Shown here: positions 759-50,474 of the stretch, piece by piece
How positions within the stretch are numbered: the stretch's first letter is position 1
How the letters are laid out: each line of letters starts with the position of its first letter
Source: Ruditapes philippinarum
Lineage: Eukaryota
Assembly: GCF_026571515.1 (NCBI RefSeq)
Contig: NW_026867146.1
Coordinates: 1-64,000 of the forward strand
DNA: 64,000 nucleotides
Direction: 5' to 3'
The notes under the pieces: model-generated
Told to the model about the DNA's origin: nothing
Database searches by the model: none
Seen by the model: only the letters and a program-made list of their open reading frames with translations
Translations under genes and position numbers: made by a program

Positions 759-1136
759 CTCATTCCAAGCTTCGTCATCAAGTTTGCCGTCTATAGTTAT
801 AGATTTCCCATTGAGATGATACGCTATATAGTTCCTAGGCAACCCAAAATCCCAGCATTCCGACGCCGACTTCAAACAAATATTCTTCTCACTATGCTTC
901 TCAACGTACCGATCAAGAAACAACTTCCCCACCGCAGATTTAATTGTCGCCTCGCTACATTCGGACTTTATGGCTTCCGCAACGGTCCCCGAAGAGGTTG
1001 TAACCGTGCTTGAACTAGTCCCGCGACCGGAAAAATAGCCAATTATTATCCCAATTGCGAACAAAACTAGAGTTACTACTGAACATATCGCTATTATTTT
1101 TCTAGTTTTAACATCCACAATAAAATAACCTGCCAT
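759..1136 (-). CDS. Gene A, exon 1 of a type II membrane CBM9-like (DOMON-superfamily) protein; exon 2 not in window (expected left of position 1)
   Basis: ATG at 1136 (MAGYFIVDVKTRK), TM helix IIAICSVVTLVLFAIGIIIGYFSG, then ECWDFGLPRNYIAYHLNGKSITIDGKLDDEAWNE. GAG|GTAAGA donor at 758, the same phase-0 position as in the six paralogues. Confidence 0.85.
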
Positions 1137-2067
1137 TTTGAATGTTTGAAAAAAAACACACAGTGTGAAGACGTTCACATTAAATCTAGTTACGCAAACA
1201 AATTTTACGGATGCAATCGTAACCTATTAAGGTTACGATTGTTTTTATAAATTTACATCAGGTTATTCGACGACAAGTTATTCATTAAGGATACACCATA
1301 ATAATGTTTAGTTACGCTGTATTGTTTCGCATGCATGCATAATTTATACCATTCACAAAAAAATGCAATTTAACCGGCTGTGAGTTTACATTATGATAGC
1401 CTGAGGCTATGATTCGCTTGAATGAATATACGTATCATCTGTATTCTGTTTAATATATTAAATAATAACTGTTTCGTAACAGTCATGGTTATACTTCACT
1501 GGACTAGCTTCCCCCTTTTGAATTTTGTACTGTCAATTGTGAACTGAAGGGGAATAATTTAATTTCAAATTACAAAATCTGTCTTGCCAAATAACGCGCG
1601 CGTTCAGGCTGGAATGACTCTGTTTAGGTGATAAAAGGTAAGTAAAAGTCACCTTTACAGAGTTAGCAGACGATACCGTTATGTGCCGTTTTTGTTGTTG
1701 TTTTTGTTGTTGGCGACAAACTGCTTTCGTCTACAATATAAATGAAATATTGCAAAAAATTACCGAATTAAATGTATTATTGCGCAGTAAACAATAAGTT
1801 CAATTCACTGTCATAATTTTTTTATATAATGAACGATGCACGTTTAATTTTTACTAAACATGTATGTGGTAAAGTTTGCTGAAATAATTAAAGCTGCATT
1901 CCACCAGATGAGGCAAAATATTTCCAGAATAACAAATTTGAGAAATATGTACTCCAATTTTAAGAAAAAAAAAAGTCAAGATAAAAGTAATAATTTATGA
2001 CCGATTTTACAGTATTTCACAGAAAATAATTTTGATCTTGCTGTAAATGAATGTGCCTTTAAAAGTT

Positions 2068-5000
2068 TTACAAGAACGTTACGTATCTGTCAGACCGGAT
2101 AAATGCCGTCGTATTTGATAAAAGCAATGAGAGAACAGTTATATTAAAGTTTGCATTATCTTTGCTATTTGAAACATCTAGTTTTGGTATTTCTACGCAA
2201 GTTCGCGTCATGAGATATGGCGGGATATCAAGTTCTCTTATGTCGTCTGTATAAAAACCGTTCAGAGCTCTGTATTGTTTCATGGCATTGAGTGAATCAA
2301 ACAAGGCTTTATAAATATGCCATCTTTCAAACGTAAATTTCCTATCTGTGAACGTCCTTTTAAACTGAACGTGGCCCCATCGGTCTTGTAAATGACCGTG
2401 AAGGGTATAGCATGGTTGCCAGACCCACCATAGTGACGTTGCATTTGGGTCCTTTTCATATTCTCCATTTTTATCGACTCTTAAATATTGTTGTGGCCTG
2501 GCAAACTGCGAGAACCACACCTCGTTATTAAATGGGTACGGCTGTTCGCGGCGGGAATTTTCAGCCAGTTTTGTGAAAGGAAGCATTATCTCTAGCGACC
2601 AATACTTATCTCTGTCAGTAGGATCATTGACCGTTCCTTCCGTATAAATGGCCCTCTCTACACCAGAATCCCATTTCATATCATGCACCTTTTTACCGGC
2701 GGCATCCCAGTATGATTTGTACATAAGCAGATCCATAGCAACGCCTCGAGCATTGAGCTCCACTTGTTCATAATTAAACAATGTGCCATCTACATCAAGT
2801 AAAAGATCAAATCCATTTTCTGTCCATATTTTTGAGTCATGGGCTGAAAATTTCGCCCAGATATCATTTTCTTGGAGGTATACTCCAATATAAAGATTGA
2901 CATCGTCCCATCTGATTTTGAACTTTGTGACGTAATGAGGTTTTGGATATACCTTACTGCGCAGGTCAAGAAATGTTTCACTCCATGGAACCTAGTGAGT
3001 AAACAAAACATAAAGTTCATTAAGGACATGTTTTGCTAGCACAATTCATACTTACATGGAAACACAATTAAAAAAATGGGGAAAATGTTTGTGTGTTTGG
3101 GTTAGTTTGTTTAGGTTTGTTTCTCTCTTTCTTTTTTTCTTCATATTAGTCTTTTGCTAGCACATGTTATACTTACATGGAAACACAATTAAAAAAATGG
3201 GGGAAATGTGTGTGTCTTTGAGTTAGTTTGTTGTGGTTTGTTTGTTTGTATCTTTCTTTTTTTTCTTCATTTTAGTCCCTTGTCATATCTTGGCGGTCAT
3301 TGCAATTAACCGGTTTTCCTGGATATCTAACACAGTAATTTTCAATTTCTGCGTAATTCACCGACTACTGAATCCCACGCTATTTTTGAATCGGCGATAA
3401 GAGGAAAATACCTCGAAATGAATTTCAAAGAAAACTAGGCGGTATACAAAATAATTAATTGAAACACAAACTTCATTTCTGATTTGTATCGTAGCTGATA
3501 TTTGCCATGTCTTATTTTCGCGCAGCGAAGCGAATATACGAGATGACACAAATCATCTACAGCACGTTATGATACAAAAATAATCAAAATTTTGTCATAT
3601 ATCTATGACTTCAAAGCCATTAAAAAGTAACAGATATGTACAATGATTTTGGTTAACATCATATGTGTACAGTTATAACTGATAAAAAAGAACGTGCACA
3701 ATGTCTTCAAGGAAAGGATGCTGTTTAATTAAAATTAATTTTTTTCTTGCTACTACCTTTGAGATTTATTTTATATGTTTGGCTAATGAAAAGTATTCTT
3801 AATATTTCCTCGTATTAAGAACAAAACGATCTAATGATATAATCATGTTTTTTCATATGTGTATAAAATTCTCAAAACATAATTATGTTAATATATAAAT
3901 AACACATGGGTTTGTGGGTAACAGTAAAAATATCATCCCGAGGAAAATACTGTTACCCGAGGCGTAGCCGAGTGTAACAGTATTTTTACGAGGAATGATA
4001 TTTTTACTGTTACCCACAAACCCATGTGTTATTTATTTTATTACCCCGAACAAAAATACTGTGATGATCTGAAATAAAAAAAAATATTGTCAACTAAATC
4101 TAACTGTAACAAAAATAAACCAAGAGTAACAATAACTAAACTGTCCTTACCTTTTAAGTTTTAAGTGAACTTTAGGCCTACTTGAGAAGTTTTCTTTTTC
4201 TTTTATTCTTTAAGCAAGTGATGATATATACAAATCATAAACATACAATAAGCTAGGTTTTATTTAGAAAACAAAACACTAACCCATTTACACGGTTATG
4301 ATCTGTGAAATCTTATCCTTCTGTTTCTAGAATATTCTTAGCATGGTTTTTGACAAAATATCGATGATATCCTATGTCTGTCCACCATATCTGTAACATT
4401 TCACTGATTAGAATTGTTAAAACTTAAATAATCCTTTGTTGCATGCTTAAATCGTCTGCATTTATTTATTTATTTATTTATTAGTTACACTTGTATTTTT
4501 TGGATTNNNNNNNNNNNNNNNNNNNNNNNNNNNNNNNNNNNNNNNNNNNNNNNNNNNNNNNNNNNNNNNNNNNNNNNNNNNNNNNNNNNNNNNNNNNNNN
4601 NNNNNNNNNNNNNNNNNNNNNNNNNNNNNNNNNNNNNNNNNNNNNNNNNNNNNNTTATTATTATTTTCTTTTTTGTAAAATTAACTTTTAGTACATAATC
4701 AAAACCTTTACCTACCTCTTTCCATGCTTCTTCGTCAAGTTTTCCATCTAGCAAGATTGTTTTTTCGTTCAAATGATACGCAATATAATGCCTTGGTAGT
4801 TCGTAGTTCCAACAATCCGACTCGCGTTTTAGACATGTAAACTTTCCGCTATTTGTTTCCTCATATCGCTTAATATACAGTCGGGTAATGTTGGAGTAGG
4901 AAAACGACTCTCGGCATAGCGGTCCGATTACTTCCGCTTTTGTGGTCTTCGAACTGCGGTTACCATCCAATGCTTGCCGGTGACCAGATACATATCCTAT

Positions 5001-5102
5001 AACGATTCCTAACACAAATGCAACAACAGCTGCCACTGTACAAAGAGCTAAGATTTTCCGAGTTTTGTTGTCAACAATAAAATAAGTAAATGGCCCCGCC
5101 AT
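2068..5102 (-). CDS. Gene B, two-exon type II membrane CBM9-like protein, 436 aa (exon 1 5102..4716, exon 2 2991..2068)
   Basis: Exon 1 MAGPFTYFIVD...DGKLDEEAWKE with donor GAG|GTAGGT. Acceptor CTAG|GTT at 2991 opens VPWSETFLDLRSKVYPKPHYVTKFKIRWDD...IRSDRYVTFL*, in frame with ORF 2068..2781. The intron contains an N gap, so exon pairing is likely but unproven. Confidence 0.85.
3031..3275. repeat. Local tandem duplication (~121-bp unit x2) in gene B intron
   Basis: ttttgctagcaca..atacttacatggaaacacaattaaaaaa..gggg..gttagtttgtt starts at 3031 and again at 3152. Confidence 0.8.
3889..4043. mobile_element. Palindromic end of a Crypton-like non-autonomous element
   Basis: ~65-bp arms (aaataacacatgggtttgtgggtaacagtaaaaatatcat / atgatatttttactgttacccacaaacccatgtgttattt) around a cgaggcgtagccgag core; same architecture as the elements at 45.4 kb and 62.1 kb. 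Confidence 0.55.
4507..4654. other. Assembly gap (148 N)
   Basis: Run of n characters. Confidence 1.
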
Positions 5103-6397
5103 CTATCTTTACACTCACTGAAAATCGACCTCTCTAACTTGATATTTAGAGAAAACGTTTAAAAGAATGAAACATAATTAACCTTGACATTAATACTTGT
5201 CATTTGTTAATTACTTAGACGATACTGCATTTCTCAAGGTAATATATTAAGATGGTATATAATTTGAGATTTGTTTCAATGATTAAATACTGTTACTACA
5301 AAACAAATGTCTTATTTCGGTTTTATAACTTTTATTTGCCTCACAGGATGAACGAAAATAAATGGTAAGTACATGATAACTTATGGAAATGTGTACGCAG
5401 CTTAAATCACGAACCTGTTGAGGATGTTAAAGTTACATGCAATGAGCCTACCAATGTGATATTTTTGGTATCATATCAACTTGCTGTTTTGCTTCAATAA
5501 CCGGTAAATAGATGGCGTTTTTTGTTGGTTTGTTTGTTGTTGTTTTTGTTTGTTTGTTTGTTGCTTTTTTGTTGTTTGTTTGGGTTTTTTCTTTGTTTTT
5601 TTTCCAGACACATCGAGTCACTTGAGTTTCAACCAAATATATGTACACGTAGCTGAGCAATCGCATATTTTAGACACTTTCCGTAAAGCTGTCTATATAG
5701 TGGAACACCTCTGTTACAACCAAACACACCTCGGTTATTATTCATATTCACCTCGGACTTTATACGGATTGAAAGTTGTTCTATCACGTAATTTGACAAT
5801 ACCTCCTTGAACATCACATTCGTGGCAAGTTTGATAGAAAATATTCCCAATCTGTTTTTCAAGTTATGGATACAAAAAAGGAATTTCAAGGGACTACCAT
5901 GAGCGCGTTTGGATTCAGTCGCCAATTCGTCAGATTCTATAAACTTAAAACAATCTCTCTTTTTAGCGTGGCCATAATTTCGCGGAATCAGCATTTCGGA
6001 CTAATGCGCGCGAATTTCTACTTTTAGTGTAGCCGAAAGAAAAATAAAAAAGAATCATTTGCAACCGAAAGCAATGTCATTATCTTCGAAGAAAGATGAC
6101 AAATTATGACTTTCTGGGTCATTTGACAGCTCGTCTAAATTCATAACTCTCGGAAAGTAGCGAAAAGCGGCGAAATCTGCCGATATCTTACGAACATGTC
6201 CTAAATTACAAATCATCTTTACGTAATTCATTAAATTTGTTACAATTTCACATATCTCAAAAATTCAAATGAAGGGTAAAGATAAGAATAGCATTTCAAC
6301 CAAATCGATTACATGTAACATAGTGCTGTTATCACCCTTTAAATCTAGGTCACAACATTTTCTGCTTTGTATATGACGTGATAAAGCCTTAAAAACA

Positions 6398-12613: not shown

Positions 12614-14495
12614 ATGCCAAGTTATATAGTGGTTGACGTAGAGACAAGAAAAGTAATTATAACATGTACGGTTACAGGACTTGTTATGTTTGCAATAGGA
12701 ATCGGAATTGGTTACGCTTCCGGTAAAGGTTCATCAAATACGGAATCACCAACTGCAAGCGTTGCCGAAGCAATACGTGCTACGTGTAGCGGTTCTGCTG
12801 CTCAGACGTCCTCTGGAAAACTTTACTTTGACCGATTTGTACAAAGACACAGTGAAAAGTATGCATGTGTTAAAACAGAGGAAGAATGCTGGAACTTGGG
12901 ATTGCCAAGAAATTATATTGCTTACCACTTGAATGGCAAAACAATCACGATTGATGGGAAATTAGACGATGACGCTTGGAAAGAGGTAAACATGTTTTAC
13001 CACTATTCTTTTGATATTGACACTTTGTCACTTTCCAGTCAGCCCGTGTTGCTTATCACTCAGTTGAACCAGGTCGTGCCAGCAGGCCTTCGGATATACA
13101 TATACATATAATAATCACCAAAACGTCAGCATTACGACGTGAGTCGTTGAGAGTACTTATATCGGACTGCTGAATTTAGTGGTGTACATCCTTGAGAAAG
13201 ATTTTACAAAATGCAGGTCGAGGCACATTTTATTAGAAATGTTATATCTTAAACAAAATAATTTATATCCTGGTTGAACTAAAGTCATTTATTCTAGTAA
13301 AGTGCAGTATCATACCGTATAATAAACATATGTACTGTACTACGGACCTTATATCAAAATAGCATTGTGGTAACCTTCCAGTCTGTTCCTGAACGGATTT
13401 CAGCCCCTGGCTTCGGCTGGGCCAACTTGGAAGTTAGTATGTAACAATGGTATGAGGCCGTCATTGCTGTTTACTTTTCCTTAAAAAATGTTTTAATAAA
13501 TCACGATTCCGTATTTTAAAGGGGTCACAATTTTATCTTTACAGGTGCCGTGGAGCGAAACTTTCGTTGACATGCGAAGTTCAGTTTATCCAAAACCATA
13601 TCTAGATACGAAGTTCAAAATACGTTGGGACGATGAACGAATGTATATAGGTGTTTATGTACAAGAAAATAATTTATGGGCGACAATTACCACACAAGAC
13701 GCGGCGATCTATAAAGAAAATGGCGTCGAATTTCTTATGGACGTAGATGGGTCTTTGTTCAATTTCAAACAAATGCAGATAAACGTCTTGGGTACAATGA
13801 TGGACCAACTGTTCTATAAATCATCTTGGGATAGCCCTGATGTACAGGTGAAGTTCAAGGACTGGCATCCTGACGTAAGGAAAGCAGTTTACACAGACGG
13901 TACTGTAAATACACCAGGTGACGAAGACAAATACTGGAGTATTGAAGTCTCGCTTTTGTTTGCGAAACTTGGTGAAAGGTCACAACGCGCGCAGCCAAAT
14001 CCCGTCGAGAACGAGGCTTGGTTTATACAATTAGGAAGATCTGAACAAAATTTGACAGTTGAGAATGGGCGCTACAAAAAAGTTCCAAGATCTAAACCAC
14101 AGTGGTGGTCATGGCAACAATGTGACACCATTAATTTACTTTTACAAGATCGCTGGGGTTTGGTGCAGTTCAAGAAAAACTTGTCAGACAAGAAGTTTCG
14201 ATTTGATAGATGGCATATTTACAAAGCCTTGTTTGATATGAAGGACGCTATGAAGAAATTTCAATCTGTAAATGGGAAGTACACGACTGACATAGAAGAG
14301 CTTGATGTTCCGCCATATTTATTGTCAGGAACTTGCGTTGAAGTTCCCGAAGTAAAGTATACTTACAGAAATAACGAAACGGCATTCAACCCGGTTACAA
14401 ATCCTATTACAGGTTTTGAGGTAACCGTTAAGTCGAAGTTGATTTCACATAAACCGGCACACATCCGGTCGGATAGATACGTTACATTCCAGTAA
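12614..14495 (+). CDS. Gene C, type II membrane CBM9-like protein, 440 aa (exon 1 12614..12985, exon 2 13545..14495)
   Basis: GAG|GTAAAC donor and TTTACAG|GTG acceptor. The joined protein reads PRNYIAY..ITIDGKLDDDAWKE-VPWSETFVD..TKFKIRWDDERMYIG..WSIEV..WSWQ..QDRWG, a CBM9-like pattern. Confidence 0.9.
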
Positions 14496-14802
14496 CTCTA
14501 AACCAACGTGTAGCAGAAAAATTTCAAACATTTTCAGATAGACGCTTGTTCAATTTATGTCTGCCATTTGGTTCCCATTCGGTCATATTTTACTTATTGC
14601 GTTGTATATATAAATAACAAAGTTTTATTCTTTCAATTAATGAACATATTATTATTCTTTTGTTGACCAACATTGTTGACGGAAACATAAGTATGTTGAC
14701 CAATATTATTTCACTTAGATATAATCAAGTACAACCTCTGCAAAGAAAGAAAAACACTTTGGAAAGCAACGATTTTGTTGTTGGTGTTGTTAAAAGTTAT
14801 GA

Positions 14803-15920: not shown

Positions 15921-15986
15921 GAGTTGGTCATCTTTATAGTTGTGGAGTATTCAGTTCAGGCTTTGATTGGAATATAAACAGCTATC

Positions 15987-18009
15987 ATGCCAAGTTATAT
16001 CGTTGTTGACGTAGAGACAAGAAAAGTAATTATAACATGTACGGTTATAGGACTTGTTATGTTTGCAATAGGAATTGGAATCGGTTTTGCTTCCGGGAAA
16101 GGTTCTTCAAATACTGAGTCACCAACTGCAAGCGTTGCCGAGGCAATACGTGCTACTTGTAGCGGTTCTGCTGCTCAGACGCCTTCAGGAAAACTTTACT
16201 TCGACCGATTTGTGCAAAGACACAGTGAAAAGTATGCATGTGTTAAAACAAAGGAAGAATGCTGGAACTTGGGATTGCCAAGAAATTATATTGCTTACCA
16301 TTTGAATGGCAAAACAATCACGATTGATGGGAAATTAGACGATGACGCTTGGAAAGAGGTTAGAAACAATATTTTACAAAGTTAAATATAAAAAGAATTC
16401 GGTAAACAAATATTTATTTTAATGCATATAAATGATTAAATCTTGTTAAAAAGATCTAACCGAGTTTTGAAGGAAACTACATATGTATTAACCATGTAGA
16501 ATTCATACTTTGCATCCTTTTGTAAGCTTATCAAAATTTAACAGTGACTTTTTCCTGTGAACGCTGTACAACTGTGGTGAATTTCTAGAACACTATAACC
16601 CCATTTACCTGACCCACTTTTATATACGTTTCTCAAAAGGTAAAGGAAGTTAGGCCAAAACCTTTACATCAATTAATGATTTCTTCACTTGCAATTGAAA
16701 AACGATTCCATTTCGAAAATAGTTTCTATTATGTACGTGTTAATTCTTTTTTATTCATTATTTGTTTGTACGCACTGTATTTGTGGTGATATATATAATT
16801 GAGCTGCGCCATGACAAAACCAACATAGTACGTTCGTGACCAGCATGGATCCAAACCAGCCTGCGCATATGCGCAGTCGGATCAGGATTCATGCTGTTCG
16901 CTATCAGTTTCTCTACTTATAGGGTTTGTAAGCGAAAAGCATGGATCCTGATCAGACTGCGCGGATGCGTACACTGGTCTAAATCCATTCTGGCCGCAAA
17001 CACACTATGTTAGTTCTTTCATGGCGCGGCTCATATGTGTGCCGTCTAATATTTACAGGTGCCGTGGAGCGAAACTTTTGTTGACATGCGCAGTTCAGTT
17101 TATCCAAAACCATATCTTGATACGAAGTTCAAAATACGTTGGGACGATGAAAGAATGTATGTAGGTGTTTATGTACAAGAGAAAAATTTATGGGCGACAC
17201 TTACCTCACAAGACGCGTCGATCTGGAAAGAAAATGGCGTCGAATTTCTTATGGACGTGGATGGCTCATTGTTCAATTTCAAACAAATGCAGATAAACGT
17301 CTTGGGTACAATGATGGACCAACTGCTATATAGATCTCCATGGGATGGTTGGGATCCAAGTATAAGTGTAATGGACTGGCATCCTAACGTAACGAAAGCA
17401 GTTTACACAGACGGGTCTATAAATACCCCGGGTGATGTGGACAAATATTGGAGTATTGAAGTCTCGTTTTTGTTTACGAAACTAGCCGAGAGGTCACAGC
17501 GCGCGCAACCAAAGCCCGCCGAGAACGAGGTTTGGTTTATACAATTAGGAAGGTCTGAACAAAATTTGACAGTTGAGAATGGGCGCTACAAAAAAGTTCC
17601 AGAATCTAAAACGCAGTGGTGGTCATGGCAACAATGTGACACCATTAATTTACTTTTACAAGACCGCTGGGGTTTGGTGCAGTTCAAGAAAAACTTGTCA
17701 AGCAAGAAGTTTCGATTTGATAGATGGCATATTTACAAAGCCTTGTTTGATGTGAGGGACGCTATGAAGAAATTTCAATCTGTAAATGGCAAAAATACAA
17801 CTAACATAGAAGAGCTGGATGTCCCGCCATATTTATTGTCAGGAACTTGCGTTGAAGTTCCCGAAATAAAGTATACTTACAGAAATAATGCAACAGCATT
17901 CAACCCGGTTACAAATCCTATTACAGGTTTTGAGATCACCGTTAAGTCAAAGTTGATTTCACATAAACCGGCTCACATCCGGTCGGATAGATATGTCACA
18001 TTCCAGTAA
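15987..18009 (+). CDS. Gene D, type II membrane CBM9-like protein, 440 aa (exon 1 15987..16358, exon 2 17059..18009)
   Basis: GAG|GTTAGA donor, TTTACAG|GTG acceptor, open frame, paralogous to C. Confidence 0.9.
16800..17033. mobile_element. Hairpin MITE in gene D intron (same family as 53399..53635)
   Basis: Long inverted arms tgagctgcgccatgacaaaaccaacatagt / actatgttagttctttcatggcgcggctca; absent from the introns of E, F and G. Confidence 0.85.
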
Positions 18010-25217: not shown

Positions 25218-27070
25218 TATTTTCTTCCATTTCATACCAAGAATATGTATGATTTTTTTCTTTTAATTATTTAACGACGATGATTTTATAATGCTTAATT
25301 AAATCAAATTAAATATTTGTTCTGTTTTCTATCAACCTTGTTCAAATATGTTTATTTGGTCAAATCAATGTGTCTTTCCAATGAAAAATAAGACTGGTGA
25401 CTATTTTCTTGTCTCAATAAAACTCATTAGTAGTACTCCGTGACAAATTATAAAATAGTTTCCACAACAAGTTTTATATATCACAGGTTCTTAATAGAAC
25501 AAGTAAGATTTTGCTTTAAATAATGCATTGCTTTTTTAAAAAAATCAATATATATTTCTAGTATTCCTAACACTATAGAAGAGGACAGAAATCGAAATTG
25601 GTAGCCTAGTTTGGAGACATTTTCATTGAAAATCTGTCAGAGTTAAATCGTATATCCATTTATGAGCGTATATATTAGTAATCTTTACTCCAATTAATGT
25701 CCAACAATATTGACCTGGCACAAAGGTCACTGGATAGTGGATAAACACTTGTTCACTGGTATCTATACTAGCAAACTTATTGGTTCAGACGTTAGTGATG
25801 GGTCATGTATTGGTATAGATCCCGGCCTACCGATTCAAGCTATAAAGGTCTCTGGGTCGATTCCTACCCAACGCCAAGTTATGTGGTGATAACAAAATTG
25901 TAATTAATAATTTCCTTGCAAGAATTAATTCGAAATCGTTTTACTACATCTGGTTTAAGGACCATTTTTAAGTAGTTATTTTTATAATATACTATTATTT
26001 ATTTTATTACAAATTACAGCACGGTTGAGATACAAAAAGATTAATCTAATAGTCGATTTCACTTGAAGTGTCAGTCGTACTGGCAAAACTGGCTGTTTTA
26101 AGAGAATGGCAATTTTACAATTAAAATAAATTTAAAGCATGATTGGTTTACTGCAGAGCTTCAGATAATTTTCCAAGCATTTAGTTTTAAACTTCTTGAT
26201 TTTTTCTTTCCACTACAGATTTCAAATTCTATTAGTTTTTTTTTATAATTTTCAATACGTTTTTTTAGTTGTTTGTTGGAGGTTTACAATTAATATTTTT
26301 CATAGAATATCAAATGAGCGACTAAAATGTCTGCAATGAAAGGCTAAGTTTTCTATAACAGAAGTAAGTTTTCCTCACGGTAATGTTAAAGTCAACTCCT
26401 TCGCCCTTCCAGTGCGTTGATTCTGCCCAAGATTACATTCAATGTCATAACTCAGCCAAATCTCTATATATTCTTAGAATTTGATCTCGATCACTTAGAG
26501 TGTAGATTTATATATCCAATGACATCTTCCAAATTAAGCAATGTTAAGTATTTCGTTTTATATGAAACCCAGAAACAGCCGGTAATGTGAAATTGGACAA
26601 GATCTGTTTCACGTAAATATTGAAATGTCCACGCCTGAATCGCTAAAAAAGGCAATGTTGAAATATCAGAATTTTTAAGACCTTCGAAACAGGGGCCAAA
26701 GCTTGAACATTTCTCCCACTCTCTAAGTTATGAAGTAGTTTTAGCATGTAAATATATTTTTGTTAACAAATGCCAGGTGTGATGATCTAAACAAACCTGT
26801 TAGTGGTATACTTAATAATGACAAGCATCAAATATAAAAATTAGTTTCATTTTTCTTTTTCATTTTTATGACCATTTGGTTTAGTATTTGTTATTTGCAA
26901 GATACCTCTTTTTTGATTATGTCTTTGATATATTTTTTACTAAATGAATTTTTTGCATGATAATAACATGAACTGTATATATGTAAACTGTTTAAACTGG
27001 GACATGACACTCATAAGCTTTCATAGCTTTCTGCCCAATCCCAAATGTATTGTATAAATTTTGTTCATTA

Positions 27071-27828
27071 TGTTATAAATTGTTCTCTCTCGTAATTATT
27101 AATTTCTACTACTTCCATAATTCCACATAAAATATACACAATAACTGTTCTTAATTTCATTTCACTGTTTATTTGTTATAAAATGTTCTAAATTTCTACT
27201 CTACAATTAATAATTAAAGTTACAGAGTTTTTCTTCCTCACACATGGTTGATAAGTCACTGAGAATTAACTCTCAAAAATCCCTATCCCGACTCTAGCTC
27301 TTACAACCTCACTCTTGCATTTTGAATCTTATTCTTCAACCTTCAATCTAGAATCCTGAATCTTGACTCTAGCTCCTACAATCTTACTCTTGCATTTTGA
27401 ATCTTGTTCTTCAATCTTCAATCTAGACTACCCCTAGAAAATCTTGTCCCAGTATTTATATGAAATACTTTGACTCTCCATATTTGGAGGTTACCTTAGT
27501 GTTAATTGACAAATCTAAGCCTTCTATATTTATGACGACAAGTGTTGATCAAGTAACTGTACCAGAAACAAACAGACTGATTCCTGGAATATTTATGATG
27601 GTAACCAATGATTGAGTTCCCTAAACACAATAATTGCAGGCCTCTTGTCCATAATTTATGCAGGTACCTGTTGACAGAGTTACCATACTAACATCTCCCA
27701 GACGGGTACACAGTCTAGCCCCAACAGATTTATAGTAATAAACAATGACAACAAATGAGGTCTCAATTCTCATACAAACTCAATCATTAAATCAAACCTT
27801 AACCAGGTGCCTTGCTAAAACTACAACA
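27071..27828 (-). repeat. 3' LTR (758 bp)
   Basis: Near-identical direct repeat of 31335..32106. Confidence 0.93.
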
Positions 27829-29091: not shown

Positions 29092-30234
29092 TTATTTTAA
29101 CAAAGTTTTTGTAATTCCCAAATGAGCGCCAGTAACTGAGTCATGTGTAGATACCAAAATCTCTTTTTGTAAAACCTTTGGAACAATAAGAATCAAAGCG
29201 TCCTCTCTTGTGTTGAGAATACTGTTACATTTTATAAACAGCACTCCATCTTTCATCACTAGCAAGTCATAGTTAAACCAGTAGTTCCTTATGTTTGGAG
29301 AATATCTAGCTACCTTGTCCCTGGAGGGTCGTTTGTTTTCAATAACCCATGTTATAACAACTTCTAAATCTGGGTCTGCTCTCTGTAGTTTTGCAATTCT
29401 GACAGGTGAATTACAAGTAATGTTGAACTGCATAAGACAACCCAAGTTAGATGCCTGAGCTTCATTTACTGATGAAACAACTTCGCCACCTAGTATGGAA
29501 TTTACGTCCTTGTCAACCACTTGTTTGCTTCCAGTAACCCACAATGTCCCAAAACCTAAATCAAGGTCTGCTCTCTGTAATTTTGCCATTCTCATAGGTG
29601 AATAATTAATAGTGTTGAACCCCTTAAGACAACCCAAGTTAGATGCCTGAGCTTCATTTTCTGATGAAACAACTTCGCCACCTAGTATGGAATTTACGTC
29701 TTTGTCAACCACTTGTGTATTAATTTCACTGATGTTGAGATTGCTTCCACTTCTTCGACCATGCGAATGTAGACTTTCACAGAAATGAAGTCGACCAATG
29801 TGATATCGAAAATACTTCCTTGTCCTATTCATTCCATGGAAAAGTGATCTTAAACAACTCAATAATCTGATAACTTGTAGCTGCATGAACAAGAAAACAT
29901 TACAGTCATTTTGAGGTTTCACTCCTAACACAACAGGTTTGATACTTTTCCCTTTACCTATGTTCTCATCGAACAAGGGAACAACATTATCAAATTCGGC
30001 AAAATCTGACCAAGACTCATGTTTCTTCATACAGGTTACACATCCTTTGCAAGGTAATTCTTCCAAAATTGTTTTTCCATCATAACAACTACACTCTTCT
30101 TGTTCACATGACATTCTAGAGAGACTGTCAAGATTTGCTTGTTTTCTCCCACTTCTATGTTCAATCCTAAAATTTAACTGTGACAAAACTTCTAAACAGC
30201 GAGCCATTTGACCTGTCGGCGACTTGAACAACAT
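29092..30234 (-). pseudogene. pol: Gypsy pol remnant: RNase H C-terminus, spacer and start of the integrase zinc-binding domain
   Basis: GQMARCLEVLSQLNFRIEHRSGRKQANLDSLSR and LIVPKVLQKEILVSTHDSVTGAHLGITKT; FYW..CKTC continues past a stop codon; no RT domain or integrase core seen. Confidence 0.85.
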
Positions 30235-32926: not shown

Positions 32927-34722
32927 ATGCCGAGTTATATCGTGTTTGACGTTAAGACAAGAAAAGTAATTATAATATGTACGGTTATAGGATTTCTTAT
33001 GTTTGCAATAGGAATTGGAATCGGGTACGCTTCACGAAAAGGTTCGTCAAATACGGAGTCACCAACTGCAAGCGTTGCCAAGTCAATCCGTGCTACGTGT
33101 AGTGGTCCAGCGGCCCAGACGCCCTCTGGAAAACTTTTCTTCGACCGATTTGTGCAAAGACACAATGAAAAGTATGCATGTGTTAAAACAAAGGAAGAAT
33201 GTTGGAACTTGGGATTGCCCAGAAATTATATCGCTTACCACTTGAATGGCAAAACAATCACGATTGATGGGAAATTAGACGATGATGCTTGGAAAGAGGT
33301 TAGAAACAATATTTCACCTACTTGTACATGTGAAGGGAATGGAAGCATATACATAAATGATTAAATTTTATTTTTATTATTTATAAGATCTAATCACGTT
33401 GTGAAGGAAACTACTTATGTATCTTCTGTATAGAAATTGTATCCAAATGTAAGCTTGTTAAAATCTTACAGTGAATAGTACATTTTAATAAGAAAGTACG
33501 ATAAGCCCTATGGTATACACAACGGTGTCAAATATCAGTGAGACCGGTGTACATGTTGCGATCAGCCCACTTTAATATACGTTGCACAAGTGGTGGAAGA
33601 AATTAGGGAAAAACCTTTCGAGCCAAAAACATATTCATTTATGTCTTGCTCGCTTGGAATTCAAAAGTAATTTAGTAACGAGTATAATTTTATTAACAAT
33701 CTAAGATTTTTTATTTTTTGTATATGCATTTTAAATATATATGATAACATATTTGGTGGGTCGTCTTATTTTTACAGGTGCCATGGAGCGCAACTTTCGT
33801 TGACATGCGCAGTTCAGTTTATCCAAAACCATATCTAGATACGAAGTTCAAAATACGATGGGACGATGAAAGAATGTATGTAGGTGTTTATGTACAAGAA
33901 AAGAACTTATGGGCGACACTTACCACACAAGACGCGGCGATCTTTAAAGAAAATGACGTCGAATTTCTTATGGACGTGGATGGGTCTTTGTTCAATTTCA
34001 AACAAATGCAAATTAACGTCTTGGGTACAATGATGGATCAACTGTTCTATAAATCTCCCGGGGATGATGTGCAGGTAAAGTTCAAAGACTGGCATCCTGA
34101 CGTAAGGAAAGCAGTTTACGCAGACGGTACTGTAAATACACCAGGTGACGAAGACAAATACTGGAGTATTGAAGTCTCGCTTTCGTTTGCGAAACTTGCC
34201 GAAAGGTCACAGCGCACGCAGCCAAATCCCGTCGAGAACGAGGCTTGGTTTATACAATTTGGAAGATCTGAACAAAATTTGACAGTTGAGAATGGGCACT
34301 ACAAAAAAGTTCCAGAATCTAAAACGCAGTGGTGGTCATGGCAACAATGTGACACCATTAATTTACTTTTACAAGACCGCTGGGGTTTGGTGCAGTTCAA
34401 GAAAAACTTGTCAGACAAGAAGTTTCGTTTTGATAGATGGCATATTTACAAAGCCTTGTTTGATATGAGGGATGCTATGAAGAAATTTCAATCTATTAAT
34501 GGGATAAGCACAACTAACATAGAGGAGCTGGATGTGCCGCCATATTTATTGTCAGGAACTTGCGTTGAAGTTCCCAAAATAAAGTATACTTACAGAAATA
34601 ATGTAACAGCATTCAACCCGGTTACAAATCCTATAACAGGTTTTGTGGTAACCGTGAAGTCGAAGTTGATTTCACATAAACCGGCACACATCCGGTCCGA
34701 TAGATATGTCACATTCCAGTAA
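32927..34722 (+). CDS. Gene E, type II membrane CBM9-like protein, 438 aa (exon 1 32927..33298, exon 2 33778..34722)
   Basis: Same splice sites and phase; open frame; 2-codon deletion in the variable loop. Confidence 0.9.

Positions 34723-37382: not shown

Positions 37383-37390
<8 letters not shown>

Positions 37391-37432
<42 letters not shown>
37391..37432. repeat. (GT)n microsatellite
   Basis: ~21 GT units. Confidence 0.95.
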
Positions 37433-37434
<2 letters not shown>

Positions 37435-39329: not shown

Positions 39330-41093
39330 ATGCCGAGTTATATCGTGTTCGACGTTAAGACAAGAAAAGTAATTATAACATGTACGGTTACAGGACTTGT
39401 TATGTTTGCAATAGGAATCGGAATTGGTTACGCTTCCCGAAAAGGTTCGTCAAATACGGATTCACCAACTGCCAGCGTTGCCGAGGCAATACGCGCTACG
39501 TGTAGTGGTCCAGCGGCCCAGACGCCGTCTGGTAAACTTTACTTCGACCGATTTGTGCAAAGACACAATGAAAAGTATGCATGTGTTAAAACAAAGGAAG
39601 AATGTTGGAACTTGGGATTGCCAAGAAATTATATTGCTTACCACTTGAATGGCAAAACAATCACTATTGATGGGAAATTAGATGATGATGCTTGGAAAGA
39701 GGTTAGAAACAATATTTCACCTAGTTGTTAAAAACATGTAAAATGAATGGAAGCATTTATAGACCTTAATATCTAAATGATTGAATTTTATGTATATTAT
39801 TTGATAAGATTTAACGCGTTGTGAAGGAAACTACATATGTATCTACTATGTAGAATTCATACTTTATATCCAATTGTAAGCTTATTAAAATCTTTCAGTG
39901 AAAGTACATTTTAATAAGAAAGTTCGATAAGGCCATTTCACAGGACCTTTTAAATACGTCACACAAGTGGTGTAGGGAATTATGGTAAAACCTTTCGAGC
40001 CAAACACATAATGTTCACTTGGAATTGAAAACTATTTTAATAACGAGTATAATTCTATTAACAATCATAGTTTTTATATATATTGTATATGCACTTTAAA
40101 TATATATGAAAACATATTTGGTGGGCCGTCTTGTGTTTACAGGTACCATGGAGCGAAACTTTTGTTGACATGCGCAGTTCAGTTTATCCCAAACCATATC
40201 TAGATACGAAGTTCAAAATACGATGGGACGATGAACGAATGTATATAGGTGTTTATATACAAGAAAATAATTTATGGGCGACACTAACCACACATGACGC
40301 GGCGATCTCGACAGAGAATGGCGTCGAATTTCTTATGGACGTAGATGGGTCTTTGTTCAATTTCAAACAAATGCAAATTAACGTCTTGGGTACTATGATG
40401 GACCAACTGTTCTATAAATCTCCTTATGATAGTCCTGATGTGCAGGTATGGTTCCAAGACTGGCAACCTGACGTAAGGAAAGCAGTTAACACAGACGGTA
40501 CTGTAAATACACCGGGTGACGAAGACAAATACTGGAGTATTGAAGTCTCGCTTTCGTTTGCGAAACTTGCCGAAAGGTCACAGCGCGCGCAGCCAAATCC
40601 CGTCGAGAACGAGGCTTGGTTTATACAATTTGGAAGATCTGAACAAAATTTGACAGTTGAGAAAGGGCAATACAAAATAGTTCCAGGATCTGAATCGCAG
40701 TGGTGGTCATGGCAACAATGTGACACCATTAATTTACTTTTACAAGACCGCTGGGGTTTGGTGCAGTTCAAGAAAAATTTGTCAGACAAGAAGTTTCGAT
40801 TTGATAGATGGCATATTTACAAAGCCTTGTTTGTAATGAGGGACGCTATGAAGAAATTTCAATCTGTAAATGGGAAGTATACAAATAAAATAGAAGAGCT
40901 GGATGTTCCGCCATATTTGTTGTCAGGAACTTGTGTTGAAGTTCCTGAAATAACGTTTACATTCAAAAATAATGCAATAGCATTCAACTATGTTACAAAT
41001 CCTATAACAGGTTTTGTGGTAACCGTTAAGTCGAAGTTGATTTCACATAAACCAGCTCACATTCGATCGGATAGATACGTCACATTCCAGTAA
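39330..41093 (+). CDS. Gene F, type II membrane CBM9-like protein, 440 aa (exon 1 39330..39701, exon 2 40143..41093)
   Basis: GAG|GTTAGA donor, TTTACAG|GTA acceptor; open frame. Confidence 0.9.
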
Positions 41094-44000: not shown

Positions 44001-44235
44001 TTACGCTACAGCCAGTAAGGGGGATCACTGCAGAACAGTTCGTCCTCAAAATCATTCGATCATTATGCAATTCTTACCAATATATAAATGAACATATTCT
44101 CGGCATTTATTTCTTGAACTTATCTTAAGTATACTAATCATTTCAATTTTTCTTGTTATCCAATTTATTTTGCTTCGACCAGACGTTTCACTCTTTTTCG
44201 CAACAGACAAACATTTCAGAATTTCAGACATGGTA

Positions 44236-44964: not shown

Positions 44965-45370
44965 TATTACTTTGTGAATTTATGCATTAGGTTTTACTTT
45001 TTCACAAAAAAATGCAACTTAATTAGTAAACAACGAGCACATACCAATAACATGGAAAAAATGATTTGTGCTTCTGATATTCAATTGTAATAGAGAACGA
45101 TTTTCAATGCTTATTGACTGTTCAAATCATTTGGCGGCGTCTTTGATGTGCAGCATCAACATTTAACTTGTTAAATATTTTAAATACAGAAATAAGCGGA
45201 CACGGAGGTGTTGATACGCTTACTTTTGTATTTACTACACACGGTGACAAGTATTTTCAAATATCTTTTCACGAAACGTCAAATATCTGTAATCAAATAC
45301 GTAAAAGAAATGAACAATGGTTTGATAATGAATGTCGGATTTAATATGACATTGCGTCACGATAAATGTG

Positions 45371-45823
45371 TGTAAGAAAAATAGAGGATATTTGTTTAGT
45401 TCAGTGTAAGATCGGAATATAATTCACCAAGTGAGCACCAAAAGGTATATTTCACGAGTGGCGCAGCCACGAGTGAAATATGAACTTTTGGTGTTCACAA
45501 GGTGAAATAAATTTCGATCTTACACTAAACTAAACAAATTTTCTTTTTATTATATGCAAAGAAACGTTTTAAAAAGACATTTAAACCTAATACTTAATGA
45601 AAAGCGCGCCAAATGATAATACAACGTGACGTCATTTACGACGTCACGTCATGAAGTTGGTACCCAGTACTGTGCACGCTGCTATTTCACTGAAACAACG
45701 TAAGGGGCTTAAATTCAAAACAGTGAAATTATCAAAGTGGTAATTTCACTGTTTCAAACAGTGAAATTACCAGTTTTATATCACTGATATATTTCTATAA
45801 AACACCGAAAAGCATGTAATAAA
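45371..45823. mobile_element. Crypton-like non-autonomous element (terminal palindrome, short terminal direct repeats)
   Basis: Palindrome centred on gtggcgcagccac; ends tgtaagaaa / tgtaataaa; empty site gtgtaagaaataatatttc at ~22085. Confidence 0.65.
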
Positions 45824-48678
45824 TAATATTTCATTTATTATATGTATTTTCTTCCATTTCATACCAAGAATATGTATGTGGTTTTTTTCTTTAACGACTA
45901 TGATCTTGTAATGCTTAATTAAGACAAATAAAATATTTGTTCTGTTTTGTTCTTCATCATCTTTGTTCAAATGTGATTATTTGGTCAATTAAATGTGTCT
46001 TTCCAATGTAATAAAGCTGATGACTGTTTTCTTGTCTAAATACGATTATAAGTAGTACTCCGTGACAAATTATAAAATAGTTTCCACGACATGTTTTAGA
46101 TGGCAATGTCTTTGAACTCCGTGACAAGTAAGTTTATTTGCTTTAAATAATTCATTGCATTTTTTAAATAGTATTCCTAACACTACAGAAGAGGACAGTA
46201 ATCGAAATTTGTATCCTAGTTTGGAGAAATTTTCATTGAAAATGTGTCAGAGTTCAATCGTATACCCAAATATGAGTGCATATATTAGTAACCTTTACTC
46301 CAGTTATTGTCCAACAATATTGACCTGGAACAAAGGTCACTAGATAAACACTTGTACACTGGTATCTACACTAGTTCAGACGTAAGTGATGTGTGGTGGA
46401 TTGGTATAGATCCCGGCCTCTATATAAAGATCTCTGGGTCGATTCCTACCCAACGCCAAGTAATGAAGATACAATTGTTTTAATTTACTTACAAGAATTA
46501 ATTTGAAATTCTTTTACTTCATCTGGTTTAAGGATCCCTTTTAAGTAGTTATTTTTCATAATATTCTATTATTTATTTTATTAAATTATCTTTTACCAAA
46601 AAGTACAGCGCGTTTGTAATACAAATAAATTAATTGAATAGTCGATTTCACTTGAAGTGTCAGTCGTACTGGCAAAACTGGCGGTTTTAAGAGAATGGCA
46701 ATTTTACAATTAAAATAAATTAATGGCATGAAGGACCATATTGGTTTACTGCAGAGCTTCAGATAATTTTTCAAGCATTTAGTTTTAAACTCCTTGATTT
46801 TTTTCCACTACAAATTTCAAATTCTAGTAGTTTTTTTTATAATTTTCAATACGTTTTTTTAGTTGTTTTCGGAGGATTAAAATTAAAGTTTTTTCATAGA
46901 ATATCAGATGAGCGACTACGCTGTCTGCAATGAATTAAGGCTCTATTTTCTATGACTGAAGTAACTTTTCTTCTTGGCAAGGTTAAAGTCCGCAACGTTT
47001 CACGTTTTTCTTCACAGACTAGAAACGATTACATTTGCTATTAACTCATTTCCTATTTCGATTTCCACGTTCTTTTTATAAAAAATAGCATAAAAATGTG
47101 TTGTCTGTTACGGACCAGGGGACATATTCAAATGATGGCCCCGTCAAATTTATTAATAACTCAAACATGGTGTTTTGAAGGTACTATATACCGAAACTAA
47201 ACATTTTGGAAGCTTTGTATGTATGACTTCGAATGGAGGTGAAAAGTTAAAAATTAAGTTTTGACAATTGGTGCCAAACAAGTAAGAAAATTCGGATAAA
47301 TTGTGTGAAAAAATATAACCGTATGACCGGCAGTTTTGTTGTAGATTTTTGAAAATGTCGTTGATTGCAATCTGTGTTAGTGATATTTTTTAAGGAATAT
47401 CGTGAATTCTGGATTATCCTGCACCTTCATGAAGATAGCCCAATATTAGATATTTCATGCACGGGGATAAGACGCTATGATCTGATATCATCCCCTACCG
47501 CTACCTTCTCCCCTCCCTCCAGTCCCAGTAACAACCCGAAAAAAACATATCATTTTATGTCAATTTCCACATTCATGACAACAATAATATGAATGACTCT
47601 ATTGCACATTATACCTCTATACCAACGAAATTATCGTCTAAAACAATTTTATACCTTTTATCGTTTAAAAGATCGTCGCTCTACTATAAAATTAGAGTAT
47701 TCCGTGCAGTGACAAAGAAAATACACGTTTTATTTTCTTTTCTTTTTTGTAGCTACAGTATAAGTAAGTGTTGGAAAGGATTTTCGTTGGTGAGCGTAAT
47801 CGGTCGTTTAGGTTTTTACAAATGCAATGATATTTCTTACGAAATATGTTTTGCATGCAATTTTTTGGCTGCTTGCAAATGCCAGTTGTGATTATCTAAA
47901 CAAACCTGATAAGGGTCTAGTTGTTAATGACAAGCATCAAATATAACGAATAGTTTTGAAACCATTTGAAAAACATGAATAGCGTTGCACGCAAGGAAAA
48001 TGTTCAATAGCGCTTTCGTGTTCGGCAAACATCAGAAGCGTTTCATTCTAGGAAACTGTTTAATAGCGCTTCATAATAGGAAAAACTTTAATGGCGCTAC
48101 ATGCTAGGAATAACGTTAATAGCGATACATGCCACGAAAATCTGTAACAGCTTCATTCTTGGAACATCTCAGACAAGTTTCATCCGATTTTGGTCCAGTG
48201 GTTACAGCAGAAATATTTGTAGAAGACCGAAGCACGGACTGACAAAAAGACGACTATCCGAAGTCCTCGCCATTAGTTCTGTATGCTAAAGTGAACTAAA
48301 AACGCTTAAACACCATCACTGTGTTGTACTTTATTTAGTTTATACTGCCACTGGACTTACTTTAATGATTTGCGAAGTTCATTGTCTTGTTTATCTAATC
48401 TTGATATTTCTGATTGAATAATATACTTTGATAAACGCTTGTGTGTTGCTCTTCTCTATCTTTAACTCATAAAGGCCGTTGCACTCTATGCTCTGAACAC
48501 AGCAGATACGTAATTATCGCCGTGCAAACGTAACTTTTCAACCATTTGGTCAATCTCCGTAAGGTTATCATTACAGATAATAGCCGAAGCTGTTCCGATT
48601 GTATCCTATAAAAAGAAGGAGTGATTTTTATACTTAGGGATTATTCAATTCAGTTTGAAAGAAATTTAAAGAGCTATT

Positions 48679-50474
48679 ATGCCGAGCTATATAGTGTTTG
48701 ACGTAAAGACAAGAAAAGTAATCATAATATGTACGGTTATAGGACTTGTTATGTTTGCAATAGGAATTGGAATCGGGTACGCTTCCCGAAAAAGTTCGTC
48801 AAATACGGAGACACCAACTGAAAGCGTTGCCGAGTCTATCCGTGCTACGTGTAGTGGTCCAGCGGCCCAGACGCCCTCTGGAAAACTTTACTTCGACCGA
48901 TTTGTGCAAAGACACAGTGAAAAGTATGCATGTGTTAAAACAAAGGAAGAATGTTGGAACTTGGGATTGCCAAGAAATTATATTGCTTACCACTTGAATG
49001 GCAAAACAATCACGATTGATGGGAAACTAGATGATGATGCTTGGAAAGAGGTTAGACGCAATATTTCACCTAGTTGTTAAAACATGTAAAAATAATGGAA
49101 TCATTTATTCATCTTAATACATATATGATTGAATTTTATGTACATTTTGTATATTATTCAATAAGATCTAAGCGCATTGTGAAGGAAACTACATATGTAT
49201 ATCTACTATGTAGAATTGATACTTTATATCCATTTGTAAGCTTATTAAAATCTTACAGTGAATAGTACATTTTAATAAGTACGATAAGCTTAATTTTATA
49301 AACAATTTCACATACGATGCAGAAGTGTTGGAGGAAATTAGGGTAAAAACTTTCGAACCAAACACATAATGTCTGGTTCACTTGGAATTGAAAACATTAA
49401 ATAACGAGTATTCACGTATTTCTATTAACAATATTTTTATATTTACTTTTATTTTTTATTTCTTGCATAAACACTTTATATAAATATGATAATATTTGGC
49501 GTGTCGTCTTGTGTTTACAGGTGCCATGGAGCGCAACTTTTGTTGACATGCGCAGTTCAGTTTATCCAAAACCATATCTAGATACGAAGTTCAAAATACG
49601 ATGGGACGATGAACGAATGTACATAGGTGTTTATGTACAAGAAACGAACTTATGGGCAACACTTACCACACAAGACGCGGCGATCTGGACAGAAAATGGC
49701 GTCGAATTGCTTATGGACGTAGATGGGTCTTTGTTCAATTTCAAACAAATGCAGATAAACGTCTTGGGTACAATGATGGACCAACTGTTATATAGATCTC
49801 CTTGGGATGGCGGCTGGGATCCTAGTAATAGTGAAATGGCCTGGCATCCAAACGTTACGAAAGGAATTTACGCAGACGGTTCTATAAATACCCCGGGTGA
49901 TGAGGACAAATATTGGAGTATTGAAGTCTCGTTTCTGTTTACGAAACTAGCCGAGAGGTCACAGCGCGCACAGCCAAATCCTGCCGAGAACGAGGCTTGG
50001 TTTATACAACTCGGAAGATCTGAACAAAATTTGACAGTTGAGAATGGGCAATACAAAAAAAATCCAGGATCTAAACCGCAGTGGTGGTCATGGCAACAAT
50101 GTGACGACATAAATTTACTTTTACAAGACCGCTGGGGTTTGGTACAGTTCAAGAAAAACTTGTCAGACAAGAAGTTTCGATTTGATAGATGGCATATTTA
50201 CAAAGCCTTGTTTGATATGAGGGACGCTATGAAGAAATTTCAATCTGTAAATGGGAAGTATACAACTAACATAGAAGAGCTGGATGTTCCGCCATATTTA
50301 TTGTCAGGAACTTGTGTTGAAGTTCCCGAAATAAAGTTTACTTACAGAAATAACGAAACAGCATTCAACCCGGTTACAAATCCTGTTACAGGTTTTGAGG
50401 TAACAGTTAAGTCGAAGTTGATTTCACATAAACCAGCTCACATTCGGTCGGATAGATACGTCACGTTCCAGTAA
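48679..50474 (+). CDS. Gene G, type II membrane CBM9-like protein, 441 aa (exon 1 48679..49050, exon 2 49521..50474)
   Basis: Same splice sites and phase; open frame; 1-codon insertion in the variable loop. Confidence 0.9.

Follow-up and report, generated by a model that had tools for sequence, protein, structure and literature searches.

A tandem cluster of two-exon genes for candidate membrane-anchored, glycan-binding proteins with a CBM9-like fold in the clam Ruditapes philippinarum

The sequence examined is a 64-kb window at the start of contig C15633 of the 1.41-Gb Ruditapes philippinarum assembly. It carries a cluster of related genes, labelled A to G in order along the contig, which we read as a tandem array of functional two-exon genes for surface proteins that would bind glycans through a domain with the fold of carbohydrate-binding module family 9 (CBM9). 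We put the probability of this reading at roughly 55%. A CBM9-like fold of the ectodomain, within the DOMON superfamily, is strongly supported by profile comparison and by a structure model, and genes C to G are under purifying selection. Beyond this, we infer surface display, glycan binding, the type of ligand and the physiological role. The lectin or receptor function put forward in the original prediction, which was made from the sequence alone, is plausible in the light of the present analysis; the roles suggested along with it, microbe recognition and particle sorting, are conjectural. New here are the colinearity with proteins encoded in bacterial operons, the split between eukaryotic and bacterial members, a five-fold expansion in Ruditapes and the concentration of variation on one loop and one candidate sugar-clamp residue.

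Gene models were built from a listing of open reading frames (ORFs), motif scans and a tblastn search of the window. Seven first exons and six second exons, all of one family, were identified, and tblastn retrieved no additional family fragments in the window. Genes B to G are complete, while gene A is represented by exon 1 only, since the window begins at base 1 of the contig and the second exon of A lies outside it. The first exons (372–387 nucleotides (nt)) each open with an ATG and encode an N-terminal tail of 13–16 residues, a single hydrophobic segment and a stalk, ending in ...AW[KN]E/GT, the slash marking the splice site. The second exons (921–951 nt) begin with AG/GTN CCN TGG (Val-Pro-Trp) and remain in an open frame until the stop. 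All introns are in phase 0, follow ...AW[KN]E and have GT..AG ends. The original prediction of seven paralogues with one architecture is borne out by the seven first exons, with their tail, transmembrane (TM) segment and stalk, and by the phase-0 intron, but only six of the copies are complete. Its statement that the coding sequence is free of stops and frameshifts holds, as 13 of 13 exons are open and have intact splice sites. The exon translations of gene F are identical to the N-terminal 124 and the C-terminal 316 residues of the RefSeq protein LOC132735000 (P0001, 440 aa), which was used as the full-length stand-in for gene F in the Pfam, structure and Atlas analyses. Likewise, the exon 2 translation of gene G includes the database protein P0003 exactly.

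The single hydrophobic segment spans residues 14–34 and follows the charged tail of 13–16 residues, with a Kyte-Doolittle maximum of 2.35 at residues 14–32; in this hydropathy plot, no other segment exceeds 1.6. The segment is longer than expected of a signal peptide that is cleaved off. The TM motif is common to the homologues of Lottia and Patella. Such an architecture suggests a type-II single-pass membrane protein with a signal anchor and the remainder outside the cell, in agreement with the membrane anchoring that had been predicted. Five extracellular Cys (P0001 residues 58, 85, 92, 317 and 388) are conserved in all paralogues of the window, and their odd number would possibly leave one for an interchain disulfide.

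An AlphaFold2 model of P0001, made on a 74-member family alignment, has a predicted local distance difference test value (pLDDT) of 91.1 and a predicted template modelling score (pTM) of 0.84. The model shows a TM helix (residues 9–35), a helical stalk (50–92), a beta-sandwich (97–338) and a long helix with a small sheet (347–439). The Pfam profile CBM9_1 (PF06452) matches P0001 with 24.9 bits (E 2.1e-5; gathering score 23.4) and its relatives with 24.8–31.8 bits. Compared with solved structures, the 74-member family profile matches 7nwn (E 1.5e-8) and 1i82 (E 4.4e-7), with only the N-terminal half aligning. Foldseek comparison of the model with CBM9 structures gives a probability of 1.0 and template modelling scores of 0.70–0.77 by target. 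With VIA-align, 4jpq reaches Z 22.0, 7nwn Z 20.5 (root-mean-square deviation (rmsd) 2.3 Å, 179 residues) and 1i82 Z 20.0 (rmsd 2.2 Å, 180 of 189 residues), and the range over 1i82, 7nwn, 7nwo and 4jpq is Z 20.0–22.0 and rmsd 2.2–2.9 Å for 179–206 residues. Haem-binding and DOMON relatives of the model score Z 8.0–14.0 by the same method. The motifs on which a CBM9-like or DOMON-superfamily domain had been postulated are present, the part that contains them aligns to solved CBM9 modules, and Pfam, profile and superposition scores all confirm the fold.

Pfam scans of the exons and of full-length homologues, at E-values up to 0.1–1, gave no C-type lectin, FReD, C1q or galectin domain, nor was any catalytic, cytochrome or oxidoreductase domain found in the clam proteins by these Pfam scans. 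Matches to IL22, DUF6808, Prominin, DUF5849 and VIT1 were all far below their cut-offs and were dismissed as chance. Searched against NCBIfam, the clam, annelid, choanoflagellate and bacterial sequences all remained without a match. The C-terminal subdomain, when folded alone, resembles type IV pilins (Z 9.4–9.7), in models based on nine sequences of which two out of five have a mean pLDDT below 50. Kinship with pilins was set aside, the likeness being that of a common helix-on-sheet arrangement.

The closest characterized modules are those of the CAZy family CBM9, namely CBM9-2 of T. maritima Xyn10A (1I82/1I8A) and CBM9.3 of C. kristjanssonii (7NWN/7NWO). They have the same beta-sandwich as the clam module (Z 20.0–20.5, rmsd 2.2–2.9 Å, 179–182 residues), with sequence likeness in the N-terminal half and an aromatic residue at the Trp71/Tyr89 position on a short inter-strand helix. 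Unlike these modules, the clam module is attached to no xylanase or other catalytic domain, has a C-terminal subdomain and an N-terminal membrane anchor and is of eukaryotic origin, and a counterpart of the second clamp Trp could not be assigned. The clam domain also appears to be about 55 residues longer, which would be due to an extra hairpin and to the variable patch described below, a loop of some 20 residues.

In CBM9, the sugar is clamped by two residues, Trp71 and Trp175 in the Thermotoga module and Tyr89 and Trp191 in the Caldicellulosiruptor module, the first lying on a short helix between two strands and the second on a loop before the last helix (PMC8280721). HMMER, when aligning the family to 1i82, pairs residue 180 of P0001 with Trp71 of T. 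maritima CBM9-2, and in the model residue 180 is located on a three-residue helix between strands. This first clamp position is aromatic in 68 of the 74 family members, being W in genes B, D and G, Y in gene C and F in gene E. A Glu six residues past it is also conserved. G115, W122, N204, W255, E258 and R289 are invariant throughout the 74-member alignment, from bacteria to clams, and are present in all copies of the window, while D153, N183, E186, N246 and H323 are near-invariant among the 74 members.

Pairwise, genes C to G are 88–95% identical in DNA and 88–97% in protein, so that their earlier description as near-identical does not stand. Their pairwise dS (synonymous substitutions per site) is 0.13–0.39, with ratios of nonsynonymous to synonymous substitution (dN/dS) of 0.06–0.39. 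Genes A and B are saturated at silent sites when compared with all other copies. Genes D, E, F and G have colinear flanks that are 81–86% identical, the duplicated unit measuring about 6.4 kb. Gene C can be aligned to D–G across its two exons only (90–93%), as its intron (12986–13544) and flanks do not align; either gene C has acquired different non-coding DNA, or conversion has homogenised its exons. The exons are more conserved than the introns and flanks (90–93% versus 81–86% or unalignable).

Exon 2 of genes C to G has 74 variable amino-acid columns, with the densest block at columns 89–122 (about residues 213–245), which corresponds to a loop of lower model confidence. The ratio of nonsynonymous to synonymous polymorphism among the copies (pN/pS) is 0.83 in this loop patch, 0.49 in the surroundings of the helix carrying the first clamp position and 0.02–0.28 elsewhere. 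Between the two loop types (C/E/F versus D/G), it is about 1.1–1.3. Twenty-five sites group D with G, all of them within nt 270–464 of exon 2, and outside this block D and G are not specially alike. Therefore, the loop has either been swapped between paralogues that lie 32 kb from each other or been maintained in two ancient types. A formal site-model test for positive selection was judged unreliable for five close paralogues with evident exchange. Counted along the alignments, the variable loop adds about 19 residues that 1i82 lacks, starting near, by this approximate count, the position of Gly108, which is among the CBM9 binding-site residues (PMC8280721). The differences at the loop and at the first clamp residue fit a diversified ligand preference.

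Four sequencing runs were mapped on genes C and D at 95% likeness, run X21 being sampled at about 4%. Runs X1 and X3 were rejected as RNA, as single contigs cross the C–D spacer; they are DNA and uninformative on expression. RNA run X21 has a depth of 1–9 on the exons of C and D and zero in the C intron and most of the C–D spacer, while RNA run X23 has no depth on the C and D exons. In related clams, intron-free Logan contigs of 1.5–2.9 kb encode complete A-type orthologues of 442 aa. Taken at face value, these data weakly indicate that expression of the cluster in R. philippinarum is likely.

An exhaustive HMMER search yielded 1667 representative clusters at E <= 0.001, many of them covering query residues 1–255 up to 1–315. 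The animal relatives come from Mactra, Mya, scallop, unionids, limpets, Elysia, Argonauta and the annelid Owenia, and the protist relatives from a choanoflagellate, a dinoflagellate, Diplonema papillatum and MMETSP transcriptomes. In a maximum-likelihood (ML) tree of the regions equivalent to exon 2, genes C to G form a clade (100/100) that is sister to the single Mercenaria gene LOC123527253, which places the five-fold expansion in the Ruditapes lineage and confirms the cluster expansion claimed before. According to the same tree, LOC123527254 is the orthologue of the A type, LOC123528165 that of B and LOC123528156 that of a further Ruditapes locus on contigs C9393/C844. In a quick tree of 74 sequences, with many rows lacking a taxon, the animals form one clade (support 96 in the Shimodaira-Hasegawa-like approximate likelihood ratio test (SH-aLRT)) and, together with a protist-containing group, are split from the bacterial set by a branch with 100% SH-aLRT support. 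This distribution argues for an old eukaryotic family with patchy retention. A recent bacterial transfer into molluscs is not favoured, as the animals group with protists apart from the sampled bacteria. The module is also found fused to peptidase M61, transglutaminase, kinase-WD40 and GHL10 domains. Neither the animal members nor the bacterial stand-alone proteins are treated in any paper retrieved by our literature searches, so that the family is undescribed in that sense, as had been proposed; automatic annotation, however, already tags relatives as 'Carbohydrate-binding domain-containing protein'.

The bacterial relatives annotated as 'carbohydrate-binding family 9-like' are stand-alone proteins of about 350–390 aa, such as P0074, to which P0001 is 33% identical over 270 aa. 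They are colinear with the clam proteins over the CBM9-like domain and the C-terminal helix and subdomain, have the same invariant residues and are likewise tethered or secreted outside the cytoplasm. The top structural match of the clam model, 4JPQ (Z 22.0), is such a comparison point too, being BACUNI_03838, a protein of unknown function. When residues 78–440 of P0001 were compared in the Atlas, the structural matches were bacterial proteins of about 360–380 aa, and also GHL10 fusions, with template modelling scores of 0.82–0.86 by target. The bacterial proteins differ from those of the clam in having a signal peptide or lipobox and in belonging to operons with genes for glycoside hydrolase (GH) families GH130 and GH38 and a sodium:solute symporter (SSF), whereas the clam proteins have a type-II TM anchor and a Cys-containing stalk and are encoded by a tandem paralogue array.

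Forty-two bacterial loci around relatives of P0074 were fetched, from at least eight phyla (Planctomycetes, Zixibacteria, Gemmatimonadota, Verrucomicrobia, Cloacimonadota, Calditrichota, Bacteroidia and others), and neighbours were counted over 40 of these. In about 26 of the 40, the CBM9-like gene is co-directional with a gene for GH130, SSF, GH38, GH20, GH92 or GHL10. Co-directional neighbours are the GH130 mannoside phosphorylase family and SSF (16 loci each), GH38 alpha-mannosidase (14), GHL10 (8), GH20 hexosaminidase (6) and GH92 alpha-mannosidase (4). The usual gene order is GH130 - CBM9-like - SSF - GH38; in a Gemmatimonadota subset, the CBM9-like gene is paired instead with genes for a radical-SAM protein and GHL10. 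Inspection of nine operons showed signal-peptide or lipobox-like N-termini on most of the CBM9-like ORFs but not on the GH130 and GH38 ORFs; one GH20 has such an N-terminus as well, and start codons are uncertain at some loci. From these N-termini and neighbours, the bacterial module would be the outward-facing, often lipid-tethered member of a unit for the import and breakdown of mannosides or N-glycans. This context is consistent with a binder that captures substrate, and it equally allows an extracellular enzyme.

Taken together, the clam proteins are proposed to consist of a short cytoplasmic tail, a signal-anchor helix, a Cys-containing helical stalk, the CBM9-fold beta-sandwich and a small C-terminal helix-plus-sheet subdomain. 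The module would be displayed on the cell surface and bind glycans there, probably chains or chain ends of the mannose/N-acetylglucosamine (GlcNAc) type, using the cleft of canonical CBM9. One ancestral gene, single-copy in Mercenaria, would have been amplified to five (C–G) in Ruditapes and kept intact by purifying selection, with the five copies differing mainly in one surface loop and the first clamp residue, which might have diversified their ligand preference. A wider version of this proposal is put forward only tentatively, as we consider it possible rather than probable. In it, the family would be a eukaryote-wide, surface-tethered CBM9-fold recogniser of N-glycans and mannosides, of the same stock as the bacterial operon partner, which venerids amplified into a small variable receptor set; it would represent a new animal lectin family, on a fold so far unused in animal glycan recognition, with a specificity tuned at the clamp residue and at a hypervariable loop exchanged among paralogues.

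From what is generally known of bivalve C-type lectins, FREPs, C1q-domain proteins and galectins, these families resemble the clam cluster in their tandem, lineage-specific expansion and in variation that is focused on a surface region of a putative binding domain. The fold of the clam proteins is unrelated to theirs, their Pfam domains are absent from the scans described above, and the family is small (about nine genes, a lower bound). If the ectodomain binds glycans, a lectin fold would be added to the animal repertoire, and the cluster would allow the diversification of paralogues to be followed on a small, manageable scale in a farmed species that is being studied for its disease resistance. 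The operon link is the first functional handle on the 'carbohydrate-binding family 9-like' family, which comprises more than 1600 representative clusters and has no tested member. It suggests high-mannose and paucimannose N-glycans, Man-beta-1,4-GlcNAc and mannan fragments as candidate ligands.

Several observations weigh against a tandem array of functional glycan binders. The CBM9_1 match of P0001 barely passes the gathering score and spans only positions 1–77 of the 185 of the profile, and the exon 2 translations alone stay below the cut-off with 18.0–18.9 bits, because the first part of the domain is encoded by exon 1. At the first clamp position, gene F encodes Ser. No counterpart could be assigned to the second clamp residue, as the C-terminal half gave no residue-level alignment. 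Counting back from the end of the structural alignment places it approximately at residue 322–323, nine residues after the near-invariant Trp314 of the same loop. His323 is found in 69 of the 74 members, but genes C to G have Leu, as has their Mercenaria orthologue P0002, while the His is kept in gene B and in the A-type orthologue P0005; His323 may thus be the second clamp position, with Leu replacing it in C–G. The six strictly invariant residues, polar or aromatic, would suit an enzyme as well as a binder. Moreover, the loop was mapped to the cleft by counting along alignments, without superposition. The operon context is that of a single bacterial subfamily, the relatives of P0074, and the eukaryotic clade to which we extend it is about 30% identical. 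A lack of spliced transcripts had been named as counter-evidence to the original prediction: the low depth of X21 is confined to exons, but splice-junction reads over genes C and D are absent from both true RNA runs (X21 and X23), and read mapping at 95% likeness cannot tell the paralogues apart.

The main rival explanation is that the module is itself a carbohydrate-acting enzyme, for instance one that releases or trims mannose/GlcNAc oligosaccharides outside the cell, and the clam proteins would then be membrane-tethered ecto-enzymes. The CBM9-like protein is indeed the main extracytoplasmic member of the bacterial operons inspected, in which the GH130 and GH38 ORFs lack signal peptides and no endo-acting glycosidase is listed. 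SSF symporters normally work without binding proteins, which also counts in favour of an enzyme. The same holds for the six invariant and five near-invariant residues across 74 members and for the conservation of the module as a stand-alone unit of about 350 aa with a C-terminal subdomain of its own, rather than as an attachment to a catalytic domain. On the other hand, the closest solved structures are binding modules, and to our knowledge no catalytic activity has been reported for a CBM9/DOMON beta-sandwich. Fusion of the module to the peptidase M61, transglutaminase, kinase-WD40 and GHL10 domains is usual for a binding module, and genes C to G have lost the near-invariant His323 yet remain under purifying selection. 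On balance, an enzyme is considered unlikely, although it is the most serious competitor of glycan binding.

A DOMON-type domain with a non-sugar ligand (haem or another small molecule), acting in redox reactions or sensing at the membrane, would have in its favour that the model matches the gamma subunit of ethylbenzene dehydrogenase (2IVF_C, Z 14.0), the NxrC chain of 7b04 (Z 12.7), the cytochrome domains of cellobiose dehydrogenase (Z 8.4–8.7) and the DOMON domain of dopamine beta-hydroxylase (Z 8.0), and that the family has near-invariant His and Lys. What is shared with these proteins is the general beta-sandwich. Their scores are far lower than those of the CBM9 modules (Z 20–22), which also superpose with a lower rmsd and are the sole solved relatives found by sequence, and the haem-binding and DOMON members give no sequence-level match. 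The bacterial gene context is glycan catabolism, not redox, and no cytochrome or oxidoreductase domain accompanies the module in the clam proteins, which makes this alternative highly improbable. Least probable of all is that the cluster is mostly silent or decaying duplicated DNA, or a haplotype artefact of the assembly, with most copies having no present function. Such decay would account for the low RNA depth and the missing splice joints in the two true RNA runs, for the diverged duplicate contigs (C9706, and C844 versus C9393, with one C844 copy broken) and for gene F being the only copy among the matches that is a named RefSeq protein. It is difficult to reconcile with 13 of 13 open exons and intact splice sites, with dN/dS of 0.06–0.39 at dS up to 0.39, with exons that are more conserved than their surroundings and with X21 depth that is confined to exons. 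Collapsed alleles can be dismissed for genes C to G, since all five share a single contig and their flanks and spacers are distinct.

Regarding gene A, contig C9706 holds a 92%-identical DNA copy of window positions 631–3024 (region C9706:33654–38765), with an A-like exon 1 (96% aa identity), which is followed about 1.9 kb downstream by an intact A-like exon 2, and a B-like exon 2 (97% aa identity). This contig may be a diverged haplotig or else the product of a recent segmental duplication. In gene B, no coding letters are lost to the assembly gap of 148 N, and the join between its exons crosses this unread stretch. Both exons best-match adjoining parts of one Mercenaria protein (residues 1–129 and 130–436), which supports that they form a single gene, with the physical link across the gap being unproven. 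A second Ruditapes locus at C9393:13484–18235, with a counterpart at C844:26631–31359, contains two more members with 50–53% aa identity to gene C. On C844, an in-frame TAG splits one of the copies (26631–27143 and 27157–27558), which is probably broken. Weak exon-sized matches are present on C9950 (494162–494296 and 505435–505545). By our own count from the assembly, the family has about nine genes per haploid genome, which is a lower bound. The features of the window are listed in Table 1.

Table 1. Exons, gap and selected codons of the gene cluster, with positions in the 64-kb window (slashes mark splice sites)
Feature	Position	Strand	Remarks
Gene A exon 1	759..1136	-	126 aa: tail, TM, stalk, start of CBM9-like domain; donor AATGAG/GTAAGA at 759
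Gene B exon 2	2068..2991	-	307 aa + stop; acceptor TAG/GTTCCATGG; best match Mercenaria LOC123528165 residues 130-436
Assembly gap, 148 N	4507..4654	.	in gene B intron, from 61 nt past the exon 1 donor
Gene B exon 1	4716..5102	-	129 aa; best match Mercenaria LOC123528165 residues 1-129
Gene C exon 1	12614..12985	+	124 aa
Gene C exon 2	13545..14495	+	316 aa + stop
Gene C Tyr codon aligned with clamp Trp71	13710..13712	+	HMMER alignment to 1i82 and paralogue alignment
Gene C variable loop patch	13809..13907 (approximate)	+	columns 89-122 of the exon 2 alignment; residues 213-245, approximately, in full-length numbering
Gene C codon for residue 323 (Leu)	14139-14141	+	near-invariant His elsewhere in the family
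Gene D exon 1	15987..16358	+	
Gene D exon 2	17059..18009	+	
Gene E exon 1	32927..33298	+	
Gene E exon 2	33778..34722	+	
Gene F exon 1	39330..39701	+	first 124 residues of P0001
Gene F exon 2	40143..41093	+	last 316 residues of P0001
Gene G exon 1	48679..49050	+	
Gene G exon 2	49521..50474	+	

Spacers full of transposable elements had also been described for this cluster, a claim that was checked in part only and for which two elements were found. The intron of gene D contains a very high-copy repeat at 16668–17055, with a summed contig word depth of 10^4–10^5. In RNA run X21, this repeat reaches about 750x per orientation with many 'opposite strands' joints, as for a foldback element or one resembling a miniature inverted-repeat transposable element (MITE), and a relative of 239 nt is located at 53398–53636. 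The spacer between D and E contains, at 29092–30234 on the minus strand, a probable retrotransposon remnant, namely an ORF of 380 aa with a weak C-terminal match to an integrase zinc-binding domain (E 1.7e-4, below the cut-off), in which a stretch of about 60 aa is directly repeated. Finally, a short ORF at 60229–60477 on the plus strand has a C2H2 zinc-finger-like motif (Cys-x2-Cys ... His-x3-His); possibly, it belongs as an exon to a gene that lies downstream of the cluster and is unrelated to it.

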